Below, piece after piece: positions 3,104 to 32,470 of a stretch of 64,000 nt of DNA. Source of the stretch: Blastocladiella emersonii ATCC 22665. Taxonomy: Eukaryota > Fungi > Blastocladiomycota. Each line of letters opens with the position of its first letter. Position 1 is the first letter of the stretch. The position numbers and the translations under genes are program-made. The DNA is taken from assembly GCA_025594325.1 (NCBI GenBank), contig JANHCV010000001.1, forward strand, positions 4,960,001-5,024,000, read 5' to 3'. The notes beneath the pieces are model-generated. The model saw only the letters and a list, made by a program, of their open reading frames with translations, searched no databases and had not been told where the DNA came from.

Positions 3104-3494
3104 GTGGACGAGTAGATTTGCTTATTTTGTTGTATTCCCTCGCACAAGATGTACCCTCTCTTGCTTCCGTGACTGTTGTCGCCGTCTTGAATCGGTTGCC
3201 TGACAGGACATGTAACTGAGGTCTTTATTGCCGCGAGTTTGCTCGTCCGTCGTCGGCACTTGCTGAGACGAAGGTTTTCGTGGTCATCGCGGCACATGCG
3301 ATGTTAAGAGTCAAAGAGCACCATGATGGCGGCCCTGATGGCGGCCCTGATGGCAACGCATTCGCAGTCCGCGACGGTCGGGACCACGCAACGCTACGCG
3401 ACGCGTGCGACGGCGAGCGGTCAACCGCAGCGGCGAAGACGGCAAAGAGCGGAGAGAAACAAAAACTGGGTATACTAGGAAGACAAACAGAACA

Positions 3495-3989
3495 TCAACA
3501 CGCCTTGACTGCCGCCGCCGGACGAAAAACGGCGGCGCAGCGGCGCTTGAGCGCGCTCCATTTGGGCGAGCGCGGCGAGAAAAAGTACTTGGCCTTAGGG
3601 TCCGGACACTCGGCGCCAACGAGCGTCTGGTCCGAGCCGAGTTCGCTGCCCTTGCTTGCCGTCAGCGAAGTCGGGCCAACAACGGCCGAGCTGCTGCCAC
3701 GACTGCAGTGGTAGCGGACCCAGCGCTTGGCCTGGGTCATGATCTCGCGGTACTTGCGCTGCTTGAGCGACGCGAGCGGGACCGACGACAAGACGATCGG
3801 CGGGAACGACATTTCGGACATCTCGGACTCGGTCTTGTTGAGCGGCGGCGGCGACGGCTTGTCGTTCTGGAGCTGCTGCCACTGCAACTGAGGAACGACG
3901 GCGGGTGTCGCGGCCGGCCCGGGGTGGTGGTGGTGATCCTGCGGCTGCTGCCACGACAGCTGGATCGGGACCACGGGCGGGGCGGAGAT
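3495..3989 (-). CDS. Hypothetical low-complexity protein, start uncertain
   Basis: ORF 3495..3974 has strong GC3 codon bias like neighbouring genes. No in-frame ATG occurs upstream of the internal MSEMSF; no domain recognised. Confidence 0.4.
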   Translation of the reverse strand: MSAPPVVPIQLSWQQPQDHHHHPGPAATPAVVPQLQWQQLQNDKPSPPPLNKTESEMSEMSFPPIVLSSVPLASLKQRKYREIMTQAKRWVRYHCSRGSSSAVVGPTSLTASKGSELGSDQTLVGAECPDPKAKYFFSPRSPKWSALKRRCAAVFRPAAAVKAC

Positions 3990-4074
3990 GGTAGTCGAGA
4001 GAGTCTCGAGGCACGAACTTACACAAGCGAAACTGTTGGTATATCAAAGGCAACAAACACCCCTACCGAGCCAC

Positions 4075-5907
4075 CTAGTCGCGGCGCTTGAGCTTGATCT
4101 CGATACCCGTGGCGTGGAGCAGGTTGCCACTGGGCGTCGTGTCGGGGACGCCTGCGAGCGCGGCCTTGTTACCCGTGACGGTCCACTCGTAGCGGAGCAG
4201 CAGCATCGACAGGATGACGCGCTGCTCGACGATCGAGAACTGCTGGCCGAGGCAGATACGCTGGCCGCCGCCGAACGGCACCCACTTGAAGTCATGTGCG
4301 CTCGGGTTCATGGCCATGACCTTGTCCTCGTTGGCGAGGAACCGCTCGGGCTTGAACTTTTCCGCGTCGTCGCCCCAGTACTCGCTTGCCGTCTGGACCG
4401 CGTGCACGTCCGACGCGACGAAGCTGCCCGTGCCGAGGTGGAGCCCGCTCGACAGCGTCACGGGCTCCATGAGCTCGCGCATCGGCATGGCGGGCACGCT
4501 CGGGTACAGGCGCATCGTCTCCTTGATGATGGCCGTGAGGTACGGCATCTGGGCCTGCTCGTCGTTGGTCGGGAACGGGAAGTCGCCGGCCGCCATGCCC
4601 TTGTCCGCGTCGCCCATGACGGCGAGCACCTCGGCGCGCGCCTTGCGCTGGATCTCCGGGTTCATGCCGAGCGAGTAGAGCACGAACGTGAGCGCGTTGG
4701 CCGTGGTGTCGTGTCCGGCGATGAAGAAGACGATGGTGTTGGCGCGCAGCTCCTCGCGCGAGAACCCGCCCGACTCGCTGGCCGTGACCATGAGCTCGAG
4801 GAGGTCCTTGGCGTCGTCGTCGTCGCCCGAGTCGTCGACGCCCGCGGCGCGGCGCTTGGCGGCCTCGGCGGCCTTGGCGTCGATCAGCGAGTAGATGAAC
4901 TTGTTGAACTCGTCGACCGACTTGGCGAACCGGGCGTAGCTGGGCAGGAACTTGTTGATGGGCGCGAGCAGGATGAACTTGGGGTTGAGCATGTCCTTCA
5001 TGACGGCGTGGTACGTCTCGACCATGGGCGTGTTGGGGTTCTCGATCGAGCCGAAGTTGGTCCCGAACGCGGCCTGCGACAGCGCGTCGAGCGTCATGCG
5101 GGTCATCCAGTCCGACACGTTGACGGTCGTGCCGCCGGCCTCGAGCTTGTCAAACTGCTCGAGCAGCGAGCGCGCGGGCGGACCGAAGATGGACGTGGCC
5201 CAGCCGCGGCGGAAGGCCGGGTTCACGACCTTGCGCTGGCGCTTCCAGTTGGGCGTCTACGAGGGAGAGGGCCGGGCGTTAGCATCCGGAGACGAGCGCT
5301 TGAGAGCGGAGTCGAAGCGTACCCGCGTCATGGCCACGTTCTGCCCGAGGAAGGCGCGGCTGACCTGGTTCGGCATCTTGGTCGCGTCCATCTTCTCGAA
5401 CTGCTCGTGGCCCGTGAGCAGCAGCTTCGAGTCCTCGGGGTTGGCCACGACGACAGTCCAACGACCAAACCTACCCGCGTTCCGCGACAACCGTGAGCAC
5501 GCGTACGCGTAGCCGAGCGACGCGCGTGTGAGAACGTACATCCAGGTGAGCCACATGCGCGGCGTCTCGTTCATACTCTTGATCGCGCCGCGACGCAGCG
5601 CGTCCTCGCGCAGCAGCTTCATCATCTCGGGCCGCCAGTTGAGGAAGCCCTCGCCCGACGTGAGGTAGTGGATCGTCTTGCGGATCGGGATGCGCGGCAG
5701 GTGGCGGAGGTGCGGCGGGACGCGGAACATTTTCCACCAGATGTGGCCCGAGACGACGGCGACGGTGGCGAGCGCCGCGAGGAGCGCCGACTTGCGCGGG
5801 CCGAGTAGCTGCGTCAGCTGCATGAGCGGGGCCAGACGCTGCTCGAGGTGCAGCGGCTCGAGGGCTTTGGCGACTGTGGTCAGCAGGTTGCTTGCAGTTG
5901 ATTCCAT
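4075..5907 (-). CDS. Cytochrome P450
   Basis: Heme motif PFGGGQRICLGQQFS, I-helix AGHDTT, K-helix ETMR, PERF, C-helix WKRQRK, and an N-terminal hydrophobic anchor. Two introns (~5471-5539, ~5259-5324). Confidence 0.95.
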
Positions 5908-6253: not shown

Positions 6254-8633
6254 TCATAACGCGTCGCGTATCAACGGATGACTCAACAACTGCGCCGCCG
6301 TCGCGCGCCGCCTTGGGTCCCACTCGAGGCACCGCTGCACAAGGTCAAGAACGAGCGGGTCGACGGAGCCGACCTGGCACAGCTGCGACAGGAGCGGGTG
6401 GTGGTTGGGCACCATGGGGAACAGCGGCTCCATGAACTTGTACTGGAGGTACCCCATGGCGTCGGTGCCCGTCACGTACCCGACCTCCTCGTCGCCGCGC
6501 GGCTGCTCGGGCCCGGGCTCGCCGTCCGCGCCCACGACGCCGTTCAGGTTGATCGGCCGCCGCGTCGACAGGAACGAGGTGCGCGGGGTACTCGGGATTG
6601 ATGCCGCGAGCGAGGACGAGGCCAGGTTGGCGAGCGGGTCGGCGACCTCCTCGAGCGGCGTCACGAGCCCCTCGGGCGGCGCCGACTCGACGACCACCGC
6701 GTCCTTGGCCGCGTACCGGTAGTGCGGGCCGATCGACTTGCGGTTGCCGAGCAGCGCGCCGAACCCGCCCGACTGGTTCGTTTCGGAGGTCGCGGTCGTC
6801 GTGTCGAGTGCGGACTCAGACTTGGGCGCGAGGAGCGGCGACGGCGGGCCGGCCGACTGCGCCGGGAGGGTGAGGTTGTCGGACGACGACGACGAGGTCG
6901 AGTCGCGGCCCGCGCCGCTGATGTAGTCGAGCAGCCGGCGTAAACGCGAGGATGGAGGTTGTGGTGGCGAGTTGATGGTCGAGTACTGGCCCTGCGCGCG
7001 GTGATTCGAGAGAGTCAGCGACGCGGCATCGCGGGAAGTGTCAGCGAGACAACGTACGAGCATGAAGTAGAGCGACCACACGTTGTCGATCTCGGAGAAT
7101 GGCGGCTTGGCGAGGAGCATCTCGTAGATCACGCAGCCTAAGCTCCAGATATCTTGAGCGCCCTTGATTTCCATGGTCTGGTTGCCGGCCACGACTACAC
7201 GCACGGCGATGACACTGTCAGCACTCGAACACGTCACTCCGTTCGCGCAATACGAACCTTCAGGGGCCAGATAACTCGGCGTCCCAACAACGCGCGCGTC
7301 GTGGACCTTGCGGCAGCACAGACCGTAGATCTTAGCCGAGCTGAAATCCGCGTGCTTGAGGATGCCCTCGCGGATCATGATATTGGCGGGTTTCACGTCG
7401 CGGTGCACGATCCCGTGGCGGTGCAGGAACTCGAGCCCGTGGACGAGCTGGCGGATCCAGAACGACAGGATGCGCATGTCGCGCAGCGGGCCATTGGCGC
7501 GGACCCACTCGGCGAGCGTGCCGCCGTCGCAGTACTCCATGAACAGGAAGCAGTCCTCGTCCATGAGGTGCGACCCGTAGTACGACAGCACGTTCGGGTG
7601 GTCCGACAGCGCCATGGCGCCGATCAGCTGCTCGAAGTTGCGCCGGTTCAGGTGCGGGTTGGCCGACGGCAGGTGGAAGTGTTTCGTCGCGACCTGCACG
7701 GGTTTCGCCGGCGCGGGCGGGGTCAGGGTCGCGAGGTAGACGAGGCCTAGCCACATAGTTCGAGGGTTAGCTCATACAGGTCAGAAACCGGTGAGTTGAA
7801 CGAAGTGTACCGACGGCGCCCTGGCCGATGAGCTCCTCGAGGCGGTAATGGAGGTGGTTCCCGAGATCCGTCTCGTCGGGGTCGAGTTCATCGAGATCGT
7901 CTTCCACGTCCTCGGTCTCCGACTCGGACAGCACACCGCCGTCGTCGGTCGACAGGCGTGACGCGTTGGACTGCGACCGCGTCCGCTCCACACCATCCGG
8001 CCCATCCGCGGCAGCCTGCGGCGGCGAGCGCGCAAACCAGTTATCGCGCTCGTCGACGGGGCTGATGCGGTCGAGCAGGCCGAGTGTGCGCGGTAGGTGC
8101 GCGCGGAGCCACGACGCGGCCGCGCTCGTGGTGGGCATCGGTGGTGGTGGTGGCGCGGCGCCGTGGTACTCGGTCGTCGCGTCCCGCAGGCTGTCCGCGG
8201 ACGGGCGCGGCGAGAGGCGGCCCGCCGCCAATACCTGCGACCCGCCACCACCGCCGTCAACGGGCGGTGACCGCGCGCGCATCAGCGGCGAGTGCGGCGA
8301 CTGCGAGCGGTTAAGGCGCGTGTGCGGCGACTTGTTGCGCGAAGCCGACACGGACGACGCGGACCGCGACAGGTTTCCCGTCGACGACGAAGATGACGAG
8401 ACGACACCATCGGACGAGTCCTGGCGGAAGATAAAGTGGGAGCGCAGGTCGGCGGCGTGCGGCAGCTGGCGGCGGTAGCGGATCCGTTTCGCGGGCTCGT
8501 CCGGGTGGTACAGGAACAGGGCGAGCTTGAGCAAGGCGAGCTGGAACAGCGTGCCGAGCTTGTCGCGCTCGCGCTGCCGCTCGGCCTCGCCGACGTGCTC
8601 GAGCTCGAGCTTCTGCAGGAGGACGCCGACCAT
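6254..8633 (-). CDS. STE11-family MAP kinase kinase kinase-like protein (SSK2/MEKK4-like kinase domain)
   Basis: After splicing: IGQGAVGLVYL, VATK, HPNVLSYYG, HRDVKPANI, ADFSSAK, GTPSYLAPE, QDIWSLGC, DNVWSLYFM, CLEWDPRRRATAAQLLSHP. The DNxW motif recalls SSK2/MEKK4. The ATG at 8633 is the probable start. Confidence 0.75.
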
Positions 8634-24885: not shown

Positions 24886-26232
24886 TTACGCGACAAGCGC
24901 GAACACGGCGAGGGCCGCGGCGCCAGCGGCCGCGAGGATGCTGCGCGAGCCGAGCGCCGATGGCGCGGCGGTGGCGGCCATCATGTCGTTGAGGGTCTTG
25001 ACCTCCTTGGGGTTGGACACGTTGAACGACATGTACATGCCGGCCTTGAAGTGGTCGTGGACGTGGCAGTGCAGCAGCCAGTTGCCCGGGTTGTCGACGT
25101 GCGCATCGGCCCACCGGAACGTCGCCGGGAACGCCTCGAGCACGTCGCGGCGGTGGCCCTCGGACATGACCGTGATGCCGTGCCAGTGGATCGTGTGGAT
25201 GTCGACCTCGGTCCCGAACGCGAGCAGGTAGAACCGCACGTAGTCGCCCAGGTCCATCTGCAGCGTCGGCAGGTTGCCGTAGAAGTAGCCGTTGATGTTG
25301 TGCATCATGTTCGACTCCTTGAACGCGTCCGACGTGTCGAGCGCGGCCAGCGCCGTCGTGTTGGACTTGATGGTGGCGGGGAGCGCCGCAAACTCCTCGG
25401 GCGTGTACGTCGTGTTCTTGGCGTACTTGGCAATGTTGGCCTTGAGGAACGACGACTCGTTCTCGTTGCCGACGACAAACGACAAAAAGAACTCCTTCTT
25501 GACGCGGAACGAGCTCGAGTCGTACTTGGGCAGCCCGTTGTCACCCAGAATGCCCGACTCGTAGACCACGAGCGCGCCGTACAGGCCGTCGTAAATGTCC
25601 GACTCCATGACGTGCGAGTGGTACGCCCACACCATGGCGCTGCCGTCGTTCGGGCCGGGACCGGCGCGGTTGGGCACGGGCCACGTGTACGTGAACGTCT
25701 TGCCGGGGTCGACCGAGGCGCCCGCGCCCGCGTCGGGGCCCATGCCGGCGCCCTCGTTGTCCTTGTCGTAGAAGACGCCGTGCGGGTGGATCGAGTACGG
25801 GTTCGTCTTGGCCTTGTTCTTGAACACGACGCGGATCACCTGGTTGACCTCGGCGCGCAGCACGGGGCCCATGATGCCGAGGTGCTCGTCCTCGGCGCGC
25901 CGCGCGACCTGCTTCTCGAACTTGTCGTCCGTATACTGCTTGTACACGGCCTTGAGGTACTTTTTGCCGATGCGGCCCTCGGCCTGCGCCGCGAACACGG
26001 CGGGGTCGGACCCGGCCGTCGTCAGCGAGTCGCCCGAGAACCCGTCCTTGCCCGAGGGAGCGTAGTCCCACTCGACCTCCTCGGCGGCCACGTAGTAGGT
26101 CCAGATGGCGCACTTGTCGTTGCGCGGGCACGGGTTCGGCGTCGACTCGGCCTCGGCCGCGGCGACCGGGGACACCGACTGCAGCAGCACCGCGAGCAGG
26201 GCGGCGAGGAGGAAGGTATGTGTCCGCGCCAT
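24886..26232 (-). CDS. Secreted, probably GPI-anchored two-domain multicopper oxidase of ceruloplasmin/hephaestin type (putative ferroxidase)
   Basis: Intronless, ~448 aa from ATG 26232. Signal peptide MARTHTFLLAALLAVLL. Ceruloplasmin-like YYVAAEEVEWDYAP, IGKKYLKAVYKQYTD, GPVLRAEV, SIHPHG, AYHSH, ESNMMHNING, EVDIHTIHWHG, PGNWLLHCHVHDHFKAGM. Hydrophobic C-terminus. Confidence 0.92.
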   Translation of the reverse strand: MARTHTFLLAALLAVLLQSVSPVAAAEAESTPNPCPRNDKCAIWTYYVAAEEVEWDYAPSGKDGFSGDSLTTAGSDPAVFAAQAEGRIGKKYLKAVYKQYTDDKFEKQVARRAEDEHLGIMGPVLRAEVNQVIRVVFKNKAKTNPYSIHPHGVFYDKDNEGAGMGPDAGAGASVDPGKTFTYTWPVPNRAGPGPNDGSAMVWAYHSHVMESDIYDGLYGALVVYESGILGDNGLPKYDSSSFRVKKEFFLSFVVGNENESSFLKANIAKYAKNTTYTPEEFAALPATIKSNTTALAALDTSDAFKESNMMHNINGYFYGNLPTLQMDLGDYVRFYLLAFGTEVDIHTIHWHGITVMSEGHRRDVLEAFPATFRWADAHVDNPGNWLLHCHVHDHFKAGMYMSFNVSNPKEVKTLNDMMAATAAPSALGSRSILAAAGAAALAVFALVA

Positions 26233-26412
26233 GGTGATACGCCCAAAGCCCGAGCGAGACAGGAAAGAATGGAGAGCAGAGAGCTCCAGCGCCTCAGAAC
26301 GGGCGAGCTTTTGAGGCGGCACCCCGACGACAAGGGCTGTGACACGGGGAGCTTGACGAGACATTTTCTCCTTCGGATCGTCTGGTTGTTATCGATGGGC
26401 GATTCAAGCAAG

Positions 26413-26479
26413 CCTTCGCGACCCACGAGGGCCTTCGCGGCCCACGAGGACCAGCACGAGGACCTTCGCGGCCCACGTG
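26413..26479. repeat. Short imperfect tandem repeat (CCTTCGCGRCCCACGWG x3, plus a partial CACGAGGA unit)
   Basis: Units begin at 26413, 26432 and 26463, read directly; they lie in the oxidase-FTR1 intergenic region. Confidence 0.8.
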
Positions 26480-26496
26480 TTGCGATCCACATTGCC

Positions 26497-26505
26497 ATCT
26501 GATAA
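26497..26505 (+). promoter_or_regulatory. Putative iron-responsive GATA repressor site ATCTGATAA
   Basis: Exact match to the ATCWGATAA consensus of SreA/Fep1-type repressors, located between the divergent oxidase and FTR1 genes. A second GATAA (TTATCGAT, minus strand) lies at 26389-26396. Confidence 0.65.
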
Positions 26506-26664
26506 ATGGAAAGTGCCGCACCCTTGCGTCCTCACGTCCCACGACCCGCGAGCAAAGGGAGAGCGTACAAATTCCTCGCTCACGCGGAGCCCCTCTCTCG
26601 CTCGCTCCCCTCCTTCGTTAGGCCGGCGCAGCGTTCCCTCTACACTATCATACTGCTGTCCGCC

Positions 26665-27778
26665 ATGTCCGACACTGGCATTCAGAAGACGTTCGGCGTC
26701 CCCGACAAGGAGGTCGAGACCAAGTTCCGGTCAACGGGCGTCTTCGATGTGCCCGCTTACTTTATCTTCGTACGATTTTGCGTTCAGCAGCCACGGGCCG
26801 TTGGCCAGGCGAGTCGAGTCGTCCAGGACTAACGGGCGCGAGCCGGCGCGGTCCTTGTAGTCGCGCGAGGTCCTGGAAATGGCCGTCATCATCGCCGTGC
26901 TGGTCACCTTCATCAACCGCATCATGGCCAGCAACGAGAAGCTGCGCAAGCAGATGGTGCGCCAGGTGTACCTCGGCGCGATCGCTGGCACGCTCGTGTC
27001 GATTGCACTGGCCGTCATCTTCATCATCCTGTTCCAGACGCTGCGCGTCGACATCTGGGGCACCGAGACGTTCGAGATCATCTTCGAGGCCGTGTTCAAG
27101 CTGCTCGCGTGCGCGCTCATCACCATCATGGCCTTCACCATGATCAAGGTCGAGTACTGGCAGCTCAAGTGGGAGCGCAAGCTCCGCGTCGCGGCGCAGG
27201 AGGCCATGGAGACCATGAACAAGTCCAAGTGGACCATGTTCCTGTTGTCGTTCACGGTCGTGCTCCGCGAGGGCCTCGAGACGCTCGTTCTCCTCGGCGG
27301 CACCTCGTCGTCGGCGTCGGCCAAGTCCATCATCCTGCCCGCCATCACGGGGATCATCACTGGGTGCCTGATCGGCTGGCTCGTGTACAAGGGCGGCAGC
27401 ACGATCGCGCTCAAGGTGTTCGTGCAGGTCTCGATCGTGTTCCTGCTGTTCATCGCTGCCGGTCTCTTCATGGGCGGGTGCCACGAGATCGAGGAGCTGA
27501 CGGGCGGCGAGATTGTCGTGCTCGAGATCGAGGACGTCGAGTTCGACCCGGATGACGGCAACGTCTTCTTCCAGATCATCGGCGCGCTGTTCGGCTGGCG
27601 GTCCGAGTGGACCGTGGTGACGGTCGTCACCTACTTCCTGTACTGGGTCGTCGCGCTCCCGGCGCTCTACTTCTACAACCGCAAGCAGACGCGCCTGGCC
27701 GAGGCGCTCGCGCGCGAGGAGGGCCAGAGCGGCTCGACCATTGCCGGCGATGACGACGAGACCAAGCGCATCGTGTAA
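26665..27778 (+). CDS. FTR1: High-affinity iron permease FTR1 family
   Basis: Two RExxE motifs (SREVLE across intron 26770-26860; VLREGLE), about 7 hydrophobic segments, WERKL, and GALFGW. Confidence 0.95.
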
Positions 27779-30754: not shown

Positions 30755-31289
30755 TCCGTGGTCGGTTGCCGGCGGTCGCGACGTGCTTGTCATTTCGTTT
30801 TTCGATACATTGAGTCATGTCCATCGGCTCCTGAGCCTCCTGAGCCTGCCAGCCGTGGCGGCTGCGTGATCGCGCATGCGGTCGTGGGATGGGATGTGTG
30901 GAACTAAGAGTCCCGTGACAGACGCGTGGACGCGTTTGTCTCGCGCGGGCCGCGGGGCCAAGCCGCTGATCCCAGCACGGCCAGCGTGCCCGGCGACACG
31001 GGCCCAGGCGGCCGATCTTGCGGTCCCAACGGCGCACCCACTGGCACTCCGCGGCCGCTGTCGGAACGCCCCCAGATGCCGCTACTGTGGAGCGAGCATC
31101 CCATCCGTGCTATCGATAGGAGATTGCGGGCGGGAGCCACCGAGTCCCTGTGGCACCGCAGAAGCTTCGGGCTTGCAGTCTCGAACACGCCACACGCCTT
31201 CCAGGCCAGGCCTAGATGCTATCTGATGATACGCGCAAGTTTACGTGCAACGCGCGTCGGGACAGCACTGAGCAATTCCGCCTTCCTTC

Positions 31290-31298
31290 ATCTGATAG
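31290..31298 (+). promoter_or_regulatory. Putative GATA site ATCTGATAG upstream of the ZIP transporter
   Basis: 8/9 match to ATCWGATAA ~110 bp upstream of the ATG. Further GATA-like words lie at ~31111-31120 (CTATCGATAG) and 31221-31231 (ATCTGATGATA). Confidence 0.45.
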
Positions 31299-31405
31299 TC
31301 GCGAGCAAAAGTATCGATCGATGGGAAGGCGGTATAAAATGCCCTCTCGTCTCTTTCCTGAACCTCTGCCCCTCTCTTGCCGACGTAACTTACTCGCACT
31401 CGACA

Positions 31406-32470
31406 ATGCCCGAAGCACGCGCCGAGCACGACTACCTCCTCGCCTTCCTCGTCACCATCGGCGCCGGCTTCTCGACGGCCATTGGTGCGCTGTCGGTGCG
31501 CTTCGGCTCGCTGCGCAACCCCAAGCTGCTGGCGGTCGGTATGGCGCTCGCGGCGGGCGTCATGCTCCTCGTGTCGCTGGTCGAGATCTTCCACGAGTCG
31601 GTGGCCTCGTTCGAGGAGGCGTGGCCCGTGGAGCAGTACCCGCACGGCAAGCGCACGGCGTACCTGCTGGCGACCATCACCTTCTTCGCCGGCGCCCTGC
31701 TCACCGTCTTCCTCGAGATGGGCGTGCACAAGTTCCAGCACGCGCTCGGCGGCGAGGACGCCGACCACCACGACCTGCCCAACCCGGCCGCGTACGGCCG
31801 CGCCGCGCGCTCCGACGAGGAGGAGACGCTTGCCGCCAAGGACAAGGACGTCGACGCCGACAAGGCCAACGACGACTGGAGCTCGCGCCCGCTGACGACG
31901 GCCGAGCGCGCCGGCCTCATCAAGACGGCCCTCATCACCGGACTCGCCATCTCGATCCACAACATCCCCGAGGGCCTGGCCACCTTCATCTCCATGTCGG
32001 CCGGCGCCAACGCGGGCCTGCCCCTTGCCTTTGCCATCGCCGTGCACAACGTACGCAGTCCACCTTGCGCGTGCACACTTCCCGCCACTCAAACCGCTCA
32101 CCGACTCACCGATCCTTGCTCCCTTGACATCTAGATTCCCGAGGGTCTCTGCGTGGCCATTCCGGTGCTCTACGCGACAGGCTCGCGGTGGAAGGGCTTC
32201 CTGTGGGGCACGCTGACCGGCCTCAGTGAGCCGCTCGGCGCCCTCATTGGTTTCGCGATCCTCGAGTCCACGGCCGAGCAGGACCTGAGTGCGACGTACG
32301 GCGCGCTGTTCGGCATCATCTCGGGCATGATGACGTACATTTCGCTGGCAGAGCTGGTCCCGACCGCGCTCAAGTACTACCCGAACCAGCGCAACATCGC
32401 CCTCCTCGTCTTTGCCGGCATGGCCTTCATGGCCGCCTCGCTTGTGCTCTTCGAGTACGCCGAGAAGTAA
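31406..32470 (+). CDS. ZIP-family divalent metal transporter, ZupT/GufA-like
   Basis: AISIHNIPEGLATF, AIAVHN|IPEGLCVAIP, GLSEPLGA, GIISGMMTYIS..ELVPTA, GMAFMAASL. One intron ~32051-32134. Confidence 0.93.

Follow-up and report, generated by a model that had tools for sequence, protein, structure and literature searches.

A ceruloplasmin-type two-domain multicopper oxidase paired with the FTR1 iron permease in Blastocladiella emersonii

At the locus described here, the FTR1 iron permease of the water mould-like fungus Blastocladiella emersonii ATCC 22665 is partnered by a ceruloplasmin-type two-domain multicopper oxidase, not by an oxidase of the Fet3/laccase type. The pair most probably serves high-affinity reductive iron uptake as a ferroxidase-permease system of the cell surface, i.e., an analogue of Fet3-Ftr1 built with a different oxidase. 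Our literature search retrieved no description of a system combining FTR1 with a ceruloplasmin-type two-domain oxidase.

The FTR1-oxidase locus

The original prediction, made on a 64,000-nucleotide stretch of B. emersonii DNA (the window), had placed an FTR1 gene and a multicopper oxidase gene head-to-head. All elements of this arrangement were found where it had put them, and the reading of a divergent FTR1-oxidase module is supported and extended by the data below. The features, in window coordinates, are as follows.

24886-26232, minus strand: coding sequence of the two-domain ceruloplasmin-type multicopper oxidase (open reading frame, 448 aa plus stop, intronless)
26158-26232, minus strand: predicted N-terminal signal peptide, approximately residues 1-25 (from hydropathy and homologue N-termini)
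25528-26106, minus strand: cupredoxin domain 1, residues ~43-235 (alignment to ceruloplasmin)
25012-25497, minus strand: cupredoxin domain 2, residues ~246-407 (residue-by-residue alignment to human ceruloplasmin, 1kcw)
24889-24945, minus strand: hydrophobic C-terminal tail, residues 430-448, putatively GPI-signal-like (translation, hydropathy)
26233-26664, no strand: shared divergent promoter, 432 bp, between the oxidase and FTR1 ATGs
26497-26505, plus strand: ATCTGATAA, an exact match to the SreA/Fep1-type iron-GATA consensus ATCWGATAA (motif search)
26665-27778, plus strand: FTR1 gene, 340 aa, one intron (spliced model)
26665-26769, plus strand: FTR1 exon 1, residues 1-35, ATG at 26665
26770-26860, plus strand: FTR1 intron, 91 nt, GT..AG, CTAAC branch site (predicted from the sequence; the spliced model equals the NCBI protein)
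26861-27778, plus strand: FTR1 exon 2, residues 36-340 plus stop (Pfam FTR1)
26864-26878, plus strand: first RExxE motif, REVLE, residue 37, TM1 (translation)
27266-27280, plus strand: second RExxE motif, REGLE, residue 171, TM4 (translation)
27482-27580, plus strand: extracellular loop 6 between TM6 and TM7, residues 243-275 (11/33 acidic; site of the oxidase insertion in chytrids)

The oxidase reading frame runs from the ATG at 26232 to a stop at 24886, and its translation is identical to database protein P0001. An upstream ATG at 26364 was rejected as the start because the annotated protein begins at 26232 and the similarity to the paralogue ends 5 nt upstream of that position. Hydropathy places a hydrophobic segment at residues 7-25, and the N-termini are comparable in all fungal oxidase homologues. 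A further hydrophobic stretch, residues 430-448, forms the very end of the protein with no cytosolic tail after it, which is not the arrangement found in Fet3. Similar terminal tails are present in the oxidases of Catenaria, B. britannica, Allomyces, Quaeritorhiza, and Syncephalis, and in sequence the C-terminal anchor resembles a GPI signal more than it does a transmembrane helix.

The spliced FTR1 model is identical residue for residue to the NCBI entry [quoted passage not shown] (P0121). Exon 2 alone scored 120.5 bits with Pfam FTR1 (PF03239; cut-off, 25.3), and the EfeU/Ftr1 model TIGR00145 matched with an E value of 2e-45 but a score of 155.6 bits, short of its curated cut-off (303.8). 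The whole protein has seven hydrophobic segments by hydropathy, and both RExxE motifs previously claimed for it were located. When the FTR1 sequence was searched against the PDB, no match was obtained at E values up to 1, and no solved structure of the FTR1 family was found.

The acidic loop noted in the original prediction as a possible Fe3+ receiver also falls where expected, the quoted sequence lying within positions 27482 to 27580. Of the three FTR1 paralogues in B. emersonii, two are paired with an oxidase; loop 6 carries 11/33 acidic residues in both pair-linked FTR1s versus 5/33 in the solo paralogue. According to a review (PMC11817551), loop 6 of yeast Ftr1, with its DASE motif, makes contact with Fet3 and participates in the channelling of iron. 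The B. emersonii loop is the positional counterpart of this Fet3-contacting loop.

The three sequencing runs found for the locus are of DNA, and the FTR1 intron is retained in their contigs. In the same runs, the oxidase coding sequence is covered at twice the depth of its flanks.

Class and metal sites of the oxidase

Pfam detected Cu-oxidase_3 (residues 120 to 225) and Cu-oxidase_2 (residues 307 to 407) in the oxidase. With two domains in both the Pfam results and the AF2 model (pLDDT, 89.8), it is not a three-domain, laccase-like protein of the Fet3 type. Laccase and ascorbate oxidase models matched the last copper motif only, far below their cut-offs. In a phmmer search against the PDB, in contrast, the oxidase gave three full-length alignments along the ceruloplasmin chain, with an E value of 1e-194. 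Ceruloplasmin was also the best match of the AF2 model in Foldseek (TM score, 0.72 to 0.73; rmsd, 2.2 to 2.3 Å; 39 to 40% identity), with trimeric SLAC-type laccases ranking next and Fet3 absent from the best 50 fold matches. As a single unit of 448 aa, and not a six-domain single chain, the oxidase is not, in architecture, an orthologue of ceruloplasmin or hephaestin.

Alignment to ceruloplasmin, for which we take the ligand status of residues to be as in the 1KCW structure, revealed the full set of 12 copper ligands. In domain 1, the trinuclear ligands H149, H151, H205, and H207 align with ceruloplasmin H101, H103, H161, and H163; this domain has no type-1 copper site and contains no cysteine past residue 41. 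The sole HCH motif lies at residues 388 to 390 in domain 2, where H346, C389, H394, and M399 correspond to the type-1 ligands H975, C1021, H1026, and M1031, and H349, H351, H388, and H390 to the trinuclear ligands H978, H980, H1020, and H1022. The type-1 site is thus confined to the second cupredoxin domain, as in two-domain multicopper oxidases. Across 40 homologues, 11 of the 12 copper ligands, including the trinuclear histidines of domain 1, are invariant, and H351 is nearly so (at least 90%).

The alignment extends to the substrate site. E306, H311, E342, and D393 match E935, H940, E971, and D1025 of ceruloplasmin domain 6; the Fe(II) site of ceruloplasmin is made up of E935, H940, and D1025 plus E272/E971.

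Linkage to FTR1 and proposed function

Head-to-head FTR1-oxidase pairs were found in Catenaria, in B. britannica, in the chytrid Quaeritorhiza, and at a second B. emersonii locus, so that the divergent linkage occurs in four species and twice in B. emersonii. The adjacency foreseen for relatives is thus present in several of them; it is absent in Allomyces, Paraphysoderma, and Syncephalis. With a second pair in the B. emersonii genome, pairs in three further species, and fusion of the two genes in four chytrid genera, the adjacency is not due to chance. A prokaryotic operon as the origin of the pairing was rejected, as no FTR1 gene adjoins the oxidase gene in Tribonema or in one Paracoccaceae genome, and the 80 prokaryotic loci examined that carry a homologue (1.05 Mb) all lack an FTR1 or EfeU gene nearby.

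The strongest new evidence that oxidase and permease work jointly is the nested fusion. In Hyaloraphidium, Nowakowskiella, and Gonapodya, a single protein comprises both FTR1 and the oxidase; the Cladochytrium model includes only the C-terminal end of FTR1, the other FTR1 exons being located just upstream in the DNA. As mapped on the DNA of two genomes and on the complete Gonapodya and Nowakowskiella models, the fused oxidase sits between TM6 (HEFEE) and TM7 (NxFFQI) of FTR1, i.e., on the extracellular side, in the acidic loop 6 itself. Such nesting fixes a 1:1 stoichiometry, marks loop 6 as the hand-off site, and constrains the architecture of the FTR1 complex. The AF2 model of the Gonapodya fusion had confident domains, low interdomain confidence (pTM, 0.56), and a TM7 pLDDT of ~40 to 65, and it was left out as evidence for packing.

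The shared promoter of the window's pair does not align with that of the second B. emersonii pair. It contains an exact match to the SreA-type consensus ATCWGATAA (PMC2610380), and the ATCWGATA core is present twice each in the oxidase promoters of Catenaria and Paraphysoderma and again in those of Allomyces and the second B. emersonii pair. In the four blastoclad species, the core occurs 7 times in 6.1 kb of oxidase promoters versus 6 times in 170.6 kb (Poisson P ~3e-9, for a motif picked with prior knowledge of the consensus). It was not found in the corresponding promoters of B. britannica, Quaeritorhiza, Syncephalis, Hyaloraphidium, and Cladochytrium, the last two being those of fused genes. 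One match, at position 6341 of locus L004, was discounted as lying inside a coding region. These motif occurrences lend only indirect support to iron regulation of the pair.

In the mechanism that we propose, the oxidase is secreted as one "ceruloplasmin unit" with its two cupredoxin domains and is probably anchored by GPI. Known two-domain multicopper oxidases are homotrimers. The B. emersonii enzyme would be expected to form one too and to hold three coppers of type 1 along with three trinuclear clusters, because the faces bearing its eight trinuclear histidines are those that in ceruloplasmin meet between different units (the domain 1/6 interface), and because SLAC structures are among its fold matches; from homology, it may associate with FTR1 in a 3:3 complex. 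Fe(II) would bind at E306/H311/E342/D393 beside the type-1 copper and be oxidized there, and the resulting Fe(III) would be handed to the acidic loop 6 of FTR1, to enter the cell via the REVLE/REGLE pathway. We infer the ferroxidase activity and the plasma membrane location of the system. In iron-replete cells, a GATA factor of the SreA/Fep1 type would probably bind ATCTGATAA and repress both genes.

Another conceivable site of action is an internal membrane, where the pair would mobilize vacuole-like iron stores as Fet5-Fth1 does in yeast. With three FTR1 paralogues and two pairs, the copies may have split roles, and topology and compartment go beyond what sequence alone settles. However, the oxidase tail resembles a GPI signal, and such signals usually target the plasma membrane or wall; moreover, the two B. 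emersonii oxidase copies differ by just 5 residues, all in mature-irrelevant ends, and therefore no distinct sorting signal is evident. Action on an internal membrane appears unlikely.

Quite unlikely, too, is that the main substrate of the oxidase is Cu(I), Mn(II), or phenolics, with the gene standing beside FTR1 through co-regulation or accident and FTR1 transporting alone. In line with such an arrangement, RiFTR1 of Rhizophagus is reported to be functional without a ferroxidase (PMC11836134), and some bacterial homologues have been automatically named "manganese oxidase." Without a joint function, however, it would be hard to explain why four genera have the oxidase covalently inserted into FTR1. 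Several fungal homologues lack the Fe-site residues, but the E-H-E-D tetrad is retained by each of the four oxidases adjacent to FTR1 and by each of the five fused oxidases in which those positions are present; among the four fungal oxidases in which it is degraded, only that of Syncephalis is shown to have no FTR1 neighbor. We thus favor the cell-surface ferroxidase-permease system as the function of the pair.

Origin and comparison with known systems

In the phylogenetic tree, the oxidase falls within a eukaryotic single-unit clade, outside both Fet3 and the laccases. Alignment, fold matches, and tree therefore agree with the predicted class, i.e., ceruloplasmin-type two-domain and not Fet3. 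The clade (support, 100/95) comprises the fungal proteins, Amoebidium, and two ochrophytes, and it is separate from the sampled prokaryotes; inside it, the blastoclads form one well-supported clade and the fused chytrid proteins another. Three-unit proteins of the protists Paulinella and Gloeochaete group by species and lie apart from the fungal clade. The sister group of the single-unit clade is formed by the repeat units of animal hephaestin. The tree hence favors the suggestion that the module is an ancestral version of the fungal oxidase-permease system, albeit with just moderate support (93/86).

It is highly improbable that the oxidase was recently acquired from bacteria by horizontal transfer and inserted beside FTR1: prokaryotic homologues of 380 aa are abundant and 40 to 48% identical, and a transfer of this kind into ascomycetes is reported for the accessory chromosomes of Fusarium oxysporum (PMC6994591), yet the fungal clade, with its well-supported blastoclad and fused-chytrid subclades, stands apart from the prokaryotes and next to the hephaestin units, and FTR1/EfeU was near the homologue in 0/80 prokaryotic loci.

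A tentative scenario, which may well prove wrong, starts from a two-domain ceruloplasmin-type ferroxidase that was already trimeric in the common ancestor of fungi and animals and was associated there 1:1 with FTR1 (3:3, implying a trimeric permease). Zoosporic fungi would have kept the pairs or the nesting in loop 6; animals would have triplicated the unit to give hephaestin and ceruloplasmin, re-partnered with ferroportin; and Dikarya and Mucoromycota would have swapped in Fet3. The zoosporic oxidases are, in any case, living single-unit relatives of the animal hephaestin/ceruloplasmin repeat, possibly of the ancestor type, and their existence makes the proposed origin of the six-domain ferroxidases by triplication testable. 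For fungal reductive iron uptake, the pair would add a second, structurally different solution beside Fet3-Ftr1, in which the oxidase would have to oligomerize for activity and, in some lineages, is part of the permease polypeptide. The genes are also obvious targets for studying how chytrids and blastoclads, some of which parasitize algae or animals, acquire iron.

Ceruloplasmin, hephaestin, and HEPHL1 share with the B. emersonii oxidase the repeat unit (rmsd, ~2.3 Å), the copper ligands, and the Fe(II)-binding residues, but they are six-domain single chains of three units, compared with the one 448-aa unit here. The animal ferroxidases partner an exporter, ferroportin, whereas the B. emersonii oxidase is linked to an importer. 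In Chlamydomonas, FOX1, a six-domain (hephaestin-like) ferroxidase of the ceruloplasmin family, works with FTR1 in iron uptake. Its six domains contrast with the two found here; the protist three-unit proteins sampled in the tree were those of Paulinella and Gloeochaete. SLAC-type small laccases have two cupredoxin domains, type-1 copper in domain 2 only, and interface trinuclear clusters, as expected for the B. emersonii enzyme; they are only ~18 to 19% identical to it and are phenol oxidases.

The bacterial EfeUOB and FtrABCD systems similarly combine an FTR1/EfeU permease with an extracytoplasmic redox or metal-binding partner that it needs, and FTR1-imelysin proteins (the FTR1-Peptidase_M75 cluster) are a precedent for permease-partner fusion. 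The bacterial partners are, however, EfeO/EfeB or P19/cupredoxin proteins and not ceruloplasmin-type oxidases. A ceruloplasmin homologue of F. oxysporum, FOYG_17127, is two-domain, was modelled as a trimer, and was interpreted as horizontally acquired; the part of that account consulted mentions no link to FTR1 (PMC6994591), whereas the zoosporic oxidases belong to an old fungal and holozoan clade with both physical and genetic ties to FTR1.

The closest functional parallel proposed here is Fet3-Ftr1. The pair shares with it a permease of the FTR1 family that has two RExxE motifs and whose extracellular loop 6 is acidic, divergent transcription of oxidase and permease genes from a common promoter and, probably, a multicopper oxidase anchored at the surface; an iron-GATA motif in the promoter is likewise a feature of the SreA-regulated ftrA/fetC genes. 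In Dikarya, FTR1 works with Fet3, a three-domain laccase-like ferroxidase with a single-pass C-terminal transmembrane helix, and the two genes are commonly divergently clustered. Fet3 is monomeric, whereas the B. emersonii oxidase has two domains, is ~40% identical to ceruloplasmin units, and probably trimerizes. The Fet3 anchor is a transmembrane helix followed by a cytosolic tail, as opposed to a GPI-like signal, and its Fe(II) site is E185/D283/D409 rather than the ceruloplasmin-type E/H/E/D. Also unlike Fet3-Ftr1, the chytrid relatives of the B. emersonii pair have the oxidase covalently nested within the permease.

The oxidase-FTR1 locus and the class of its oxidase

The locus is carried on a 5.14-Mb contig of Blastocladiella emersonii ATCC 22665 (assembly GCA_025594325.1) and consists of two divergent genes whose start codons lie 432 bp apart (P and L numbers are our own handles for proteins and genomic loci).

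24886-26232, minus strand: oxidase ORF, 448 aa, no intron (ATG 26232, stop 24886), identical to database protein P0001
26665-27778, plus strand: FTR1 gene, with a 91-nt GT..AG intron at 26770-26860
FTR1 residue 37: REVLE, an RExxE motif
FTR1 residue 171: REGLE, an RExxE motif

Once spliced, the FTR1 model exactly matches a 340-aa NCBI protein (P0121) with seven hydrophobic segments and a TM6-TM7 loop in which 11 of the 33 residues are acidic. The original prediction had described both genes, the RExxE motifs, and the acidic loop, and was right throughout. Database names of the gene products are generic ("Cupredoxin," "hephaestin-like 1," "high-affinity iron permease").

The oxidase comprises the Pfam domains Cu-oxidase_3 and Cu-oxidase_2. 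Among PDB sequences its top match is ceruloplasmin, with three full-length alignments along that protein (E 1e-194), followed by coagulation factors V and VIII, the SLAC-type small laccases being far weaker. In the alignment to human ceruloplasmin (1kcw), whose ligand residues are established from that structure, the type 1 copper ligands H346, C389, H394, and M399 correspond to H975, C1021, H1026, and M1031; the trinuclear ligands correspond likewise, both in domain 2 (H349, H351, H388, and H390 to H978, H980, H1020, and H1022) and in domain 1 (H149/H151 and H205/H207 to H101/H103 and H161/H163). All four residues of the ceruloplasmin domain-6 Fe(II) site are also matched, by E306 (E935), H311 (H940), D393 (D1025), and E342 (E971/E272). 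Of the 12 copper ligands, all but H351 are invariant across 40 homologues, and H351 is nearly so (90% or more). The AF2 model of the oxidase (pLDDT 89.8, pTM 0.83) superimposes on ceruloplasmin with a TM score of 0.72-0.73 and an rmsd of 2.2-2.3 Å; trimeric two-domain laccases rank lower, and no Fet3 is found among its top 50 fold matches.

The ceruloplasmin trinuclear cluster is located between domain 1, in the first unit, and domain 6, in the third, while SLAC-type enzymes build their trinuclear clusters as homotrimers. Because the ceruloplasmin cluster spans the first and third units, a single-unit oxidase should by analogy need to form a homotrimer to assemble its own. The N terminus of the oxidase has a signal-like segment, and the chain ends in a hydrophobic stretch resembling a GPI signal, a terminal tail also present in the oxidases of Catenaria, Blastocladiella britannica, Allomyces, Quaeritorhiza, and Syncephalis.

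Linkage to FTR1 and the shared promoter

The divergent arrangement also occurs in Catenaria anguillulae, B. britannica, and the chytrid Quaeritorhiza haematococci, and a second pair is present in Blastocladiella emersonii itself, on the same contig (L007:5082-8080; window 24896-26237). FTR1 adjacency was not found at the oxidase loci of Allomyces, Paraphysoderma, and Syncephalis. Syncephalis fuscata has a head-to-head pair of ceruloplasmin-type oxidase genes (L005:4014-7530), with no FTR1 nearby; the one oxidase examined reads E-H-M-D at the Fe site, one residue having been lost.

The Fe-site tetrad (E-H-E-D) is retained in every FTR1-adjacent oxidase and in every fused oxidase (see below) that has those positions. 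It is degraded in four other fungal oxidases (B. britannica 2, Syncephalis, Thamnocephalis, and Calcarisporiella), of which Syncephalis alone was shown to be without an FTR1 neighbor. On the permease side, loop 6 is strongly acidic (11/33) in both pair-linked B. emersonii FTR1s, compared to 5/33 in a third, solo paralogue (P0124, L008:7001-8070), the locus of which has no oxidase neighbor.

The two B. emersonii oxidase coding sequences share 99.55% nucleotide identity, and their five amino acid differences all fall in the signal peptide or tail. Between the FTR1 genes of the two pairs, in contrast, identity is only 82%, and the two promoters cannot be aligned. In independent DNA runs, depth is twofold over the oxidase coding sequence, and the contig graph branches at both of its ends. 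Together, these observations look like the result of gene conversion between two old duplicate pairs, confined to the oxidase.

The shared promoter contains ATCTGATAA at 26497, a match to the SreA/Fep1-type iron-GATA consensus ATCWGATAA (PMC2610380). Its ATCWGATA core recurs in the oxidase promoters of the second B. emersonii pair (though this promoter is otherwise unalignable with that of the window), Catenaria (two), Allomyces, and Paraphysoderma (two), giving seven matches in 6.1 kb of oxidase promoters, compared to six in 170.6 kb of sequence elsewhere (Poisson P about 3e-9). Two of these six "background" matches are directly upstream of a further gene in the window:

31220-31297 and 31403-32092: ZupT-like ZIP transporter gene (3.6 kb past FTR1) and the two ATCWGATA motifs before it

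The core was not found in the promoters of B. britannica, Quaeritorhiza, or the fused genes, nor anywhere in the 15-kb locus of the solo FTR1. From the motif, we infer that the oxidase-FTR1 pair would be iron regulated. The protein encoded by the ZIP gene shares 32% identity with the ZIP portion of P0257, an Amoebidium parasiticum transcript that joins a ZIP transporter to a member of the same oxidase clade and that may be a transcriptome chimera.

Nested FTR1-oxidase fusions in chytrids

The key new evidence for an oxidase-permease reading is provided by relatives in which the two proteins are fused, one within the other. By Pfam, FTR1 is followed by two cupredoxin domains in single proteins of Hyaloraphidium (P0290), Nowakowskiella (P0261), and Gonapodya (P0311), and in a Cladochytrium model (P0248) the FTR1 portion is the C-terminal end only. 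In Gonapodya, a single model (P0311) shows the complete arrangement: REALE, REGLE, HEFEE, oxidase, NFFFQIM, and TM7. In Hyaloraphidium DNA, TM6 (ending in HEFEE) and the oxidase N terminus share a single open frame, and an exon with the NxFFQI motif and TM7, absent from the annotated model, follows the oxidase. The Cladochytrium model, truncated at the 5′ end, spans TM6, oxidase, and TM7, with FTR1 exons directly upstream. In Nowakowskiella P0313 the elements are nested in this order too, with degenerate RExxE, HEFEE, and NxFFQI motifs.

As to the individual models, that of Hyaloraphidium (L009:4001-7017) reads through a splice donor and lacks the TM7 exon (ORF 6697-7017), and that of Cladochytrium (L010:3307-5915) is missing the upstream FTR1 exons at 3307-4087. 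In P0313, a complete nested protein from Nowakowskiella sp. JEL0078, both RExxE motifs are degenerate and the oxidase keeps every copper and Fe-site residue; the permease portion may have lost transport and been retained as a membrane anchor.

Since the oxidase sits between HEFEE/TM6 and NxFFQI/TM7, the sequences place the chytrid oxidase within extracellular loop 6 of FTR1. Yeast Ftr1 has an N-out, seven-TM topology, from which loop 6 would face outward. In yeast, the DASE motif of this loop touches Fet3 and is involved in channeling iron (reviewed in PMC11817551). The B. emersonii counterpart of the fusion-bearing loop is the acidic stretch flagged in the original prediction. Among the Atlas structural neighbors of FTR1 is a bacterial cluster in which FTR1 is fused to an imelysin (Peptidase_M75, EfeO-like) domain, an independent precedent for a permease fused to an extracytoplasmic partner.

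Origin and comparison with known systems

An exhaustive profile search yielded about 1450 cluster representatives of oxidase homologues (E below 1e-10). In an unrooted maximum likelihood tree of 64 two-domain units, the fungal oxidases form a clade (100/95) with the ichthyosporean Amoebidium, two ochrophytes, and one metagenomic sequence. The sister group, with moderate support (93/86), is a clade of the repeat units of animal hephaestin-like proteins (100/98). Prokaryotic proteins, Paulinella, and Gloeochaete fall outside both. All three units of Paulinella micropora P0160 cluster together (100/100), as do units 2 and 3 of the three-unit Gloeochaete wittrockiana P0162 (97/97); this grouping by species suggests that their triplications were independent of the animal one.

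FTR1/EfeU was detected within 8 kb at none of 80 prokaryotic loci with an oxidase homologue, the same scan recovering four of four FTR1-bearing fungal loci used as a control. Together with the tree position, this indicates that the oxidase is not a recent bacterial import and that its association with FTR1 is of eukaryotic origin. The fused proteins of chytrids group together (100/94), as do the blastoclad oxidases (100/98); the pair may have given rise to the fusion, or the reverse.

Overall, copper- and Fe-site alignment, fold, synteny, and nested fusion support the proposal that FTR1 is here partnered by a ceruloplasmin-type two-domain oxidase, and the pair very probably constitutes a functional ferroxidase-permease module. 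In the open-access literature, we found no account of zoosporic fungi whose FTR1 is paired with, or fused to, an oxidase of this kind, and we take the pairing to be a new form of the oxidase-permease system. A two-domain ceruloplasmin homologue of Fusarium oxysporum has been read as horizontally acquired and modeled as a trimer; unlike for the B. emersonii oxidase, no link to FTR1 is mentioned in the parts of that report consulted (PMC6994591). By analogy, the B. emersonii system would work as Fet3-Ftr1 does, but its oxidase differs from Fet3 in both features tested, domain number and anchor. With ceruloplasmin and hephaestin it has in common the unit, the ligands, and the Fe site, differing in having one unit where they have three.
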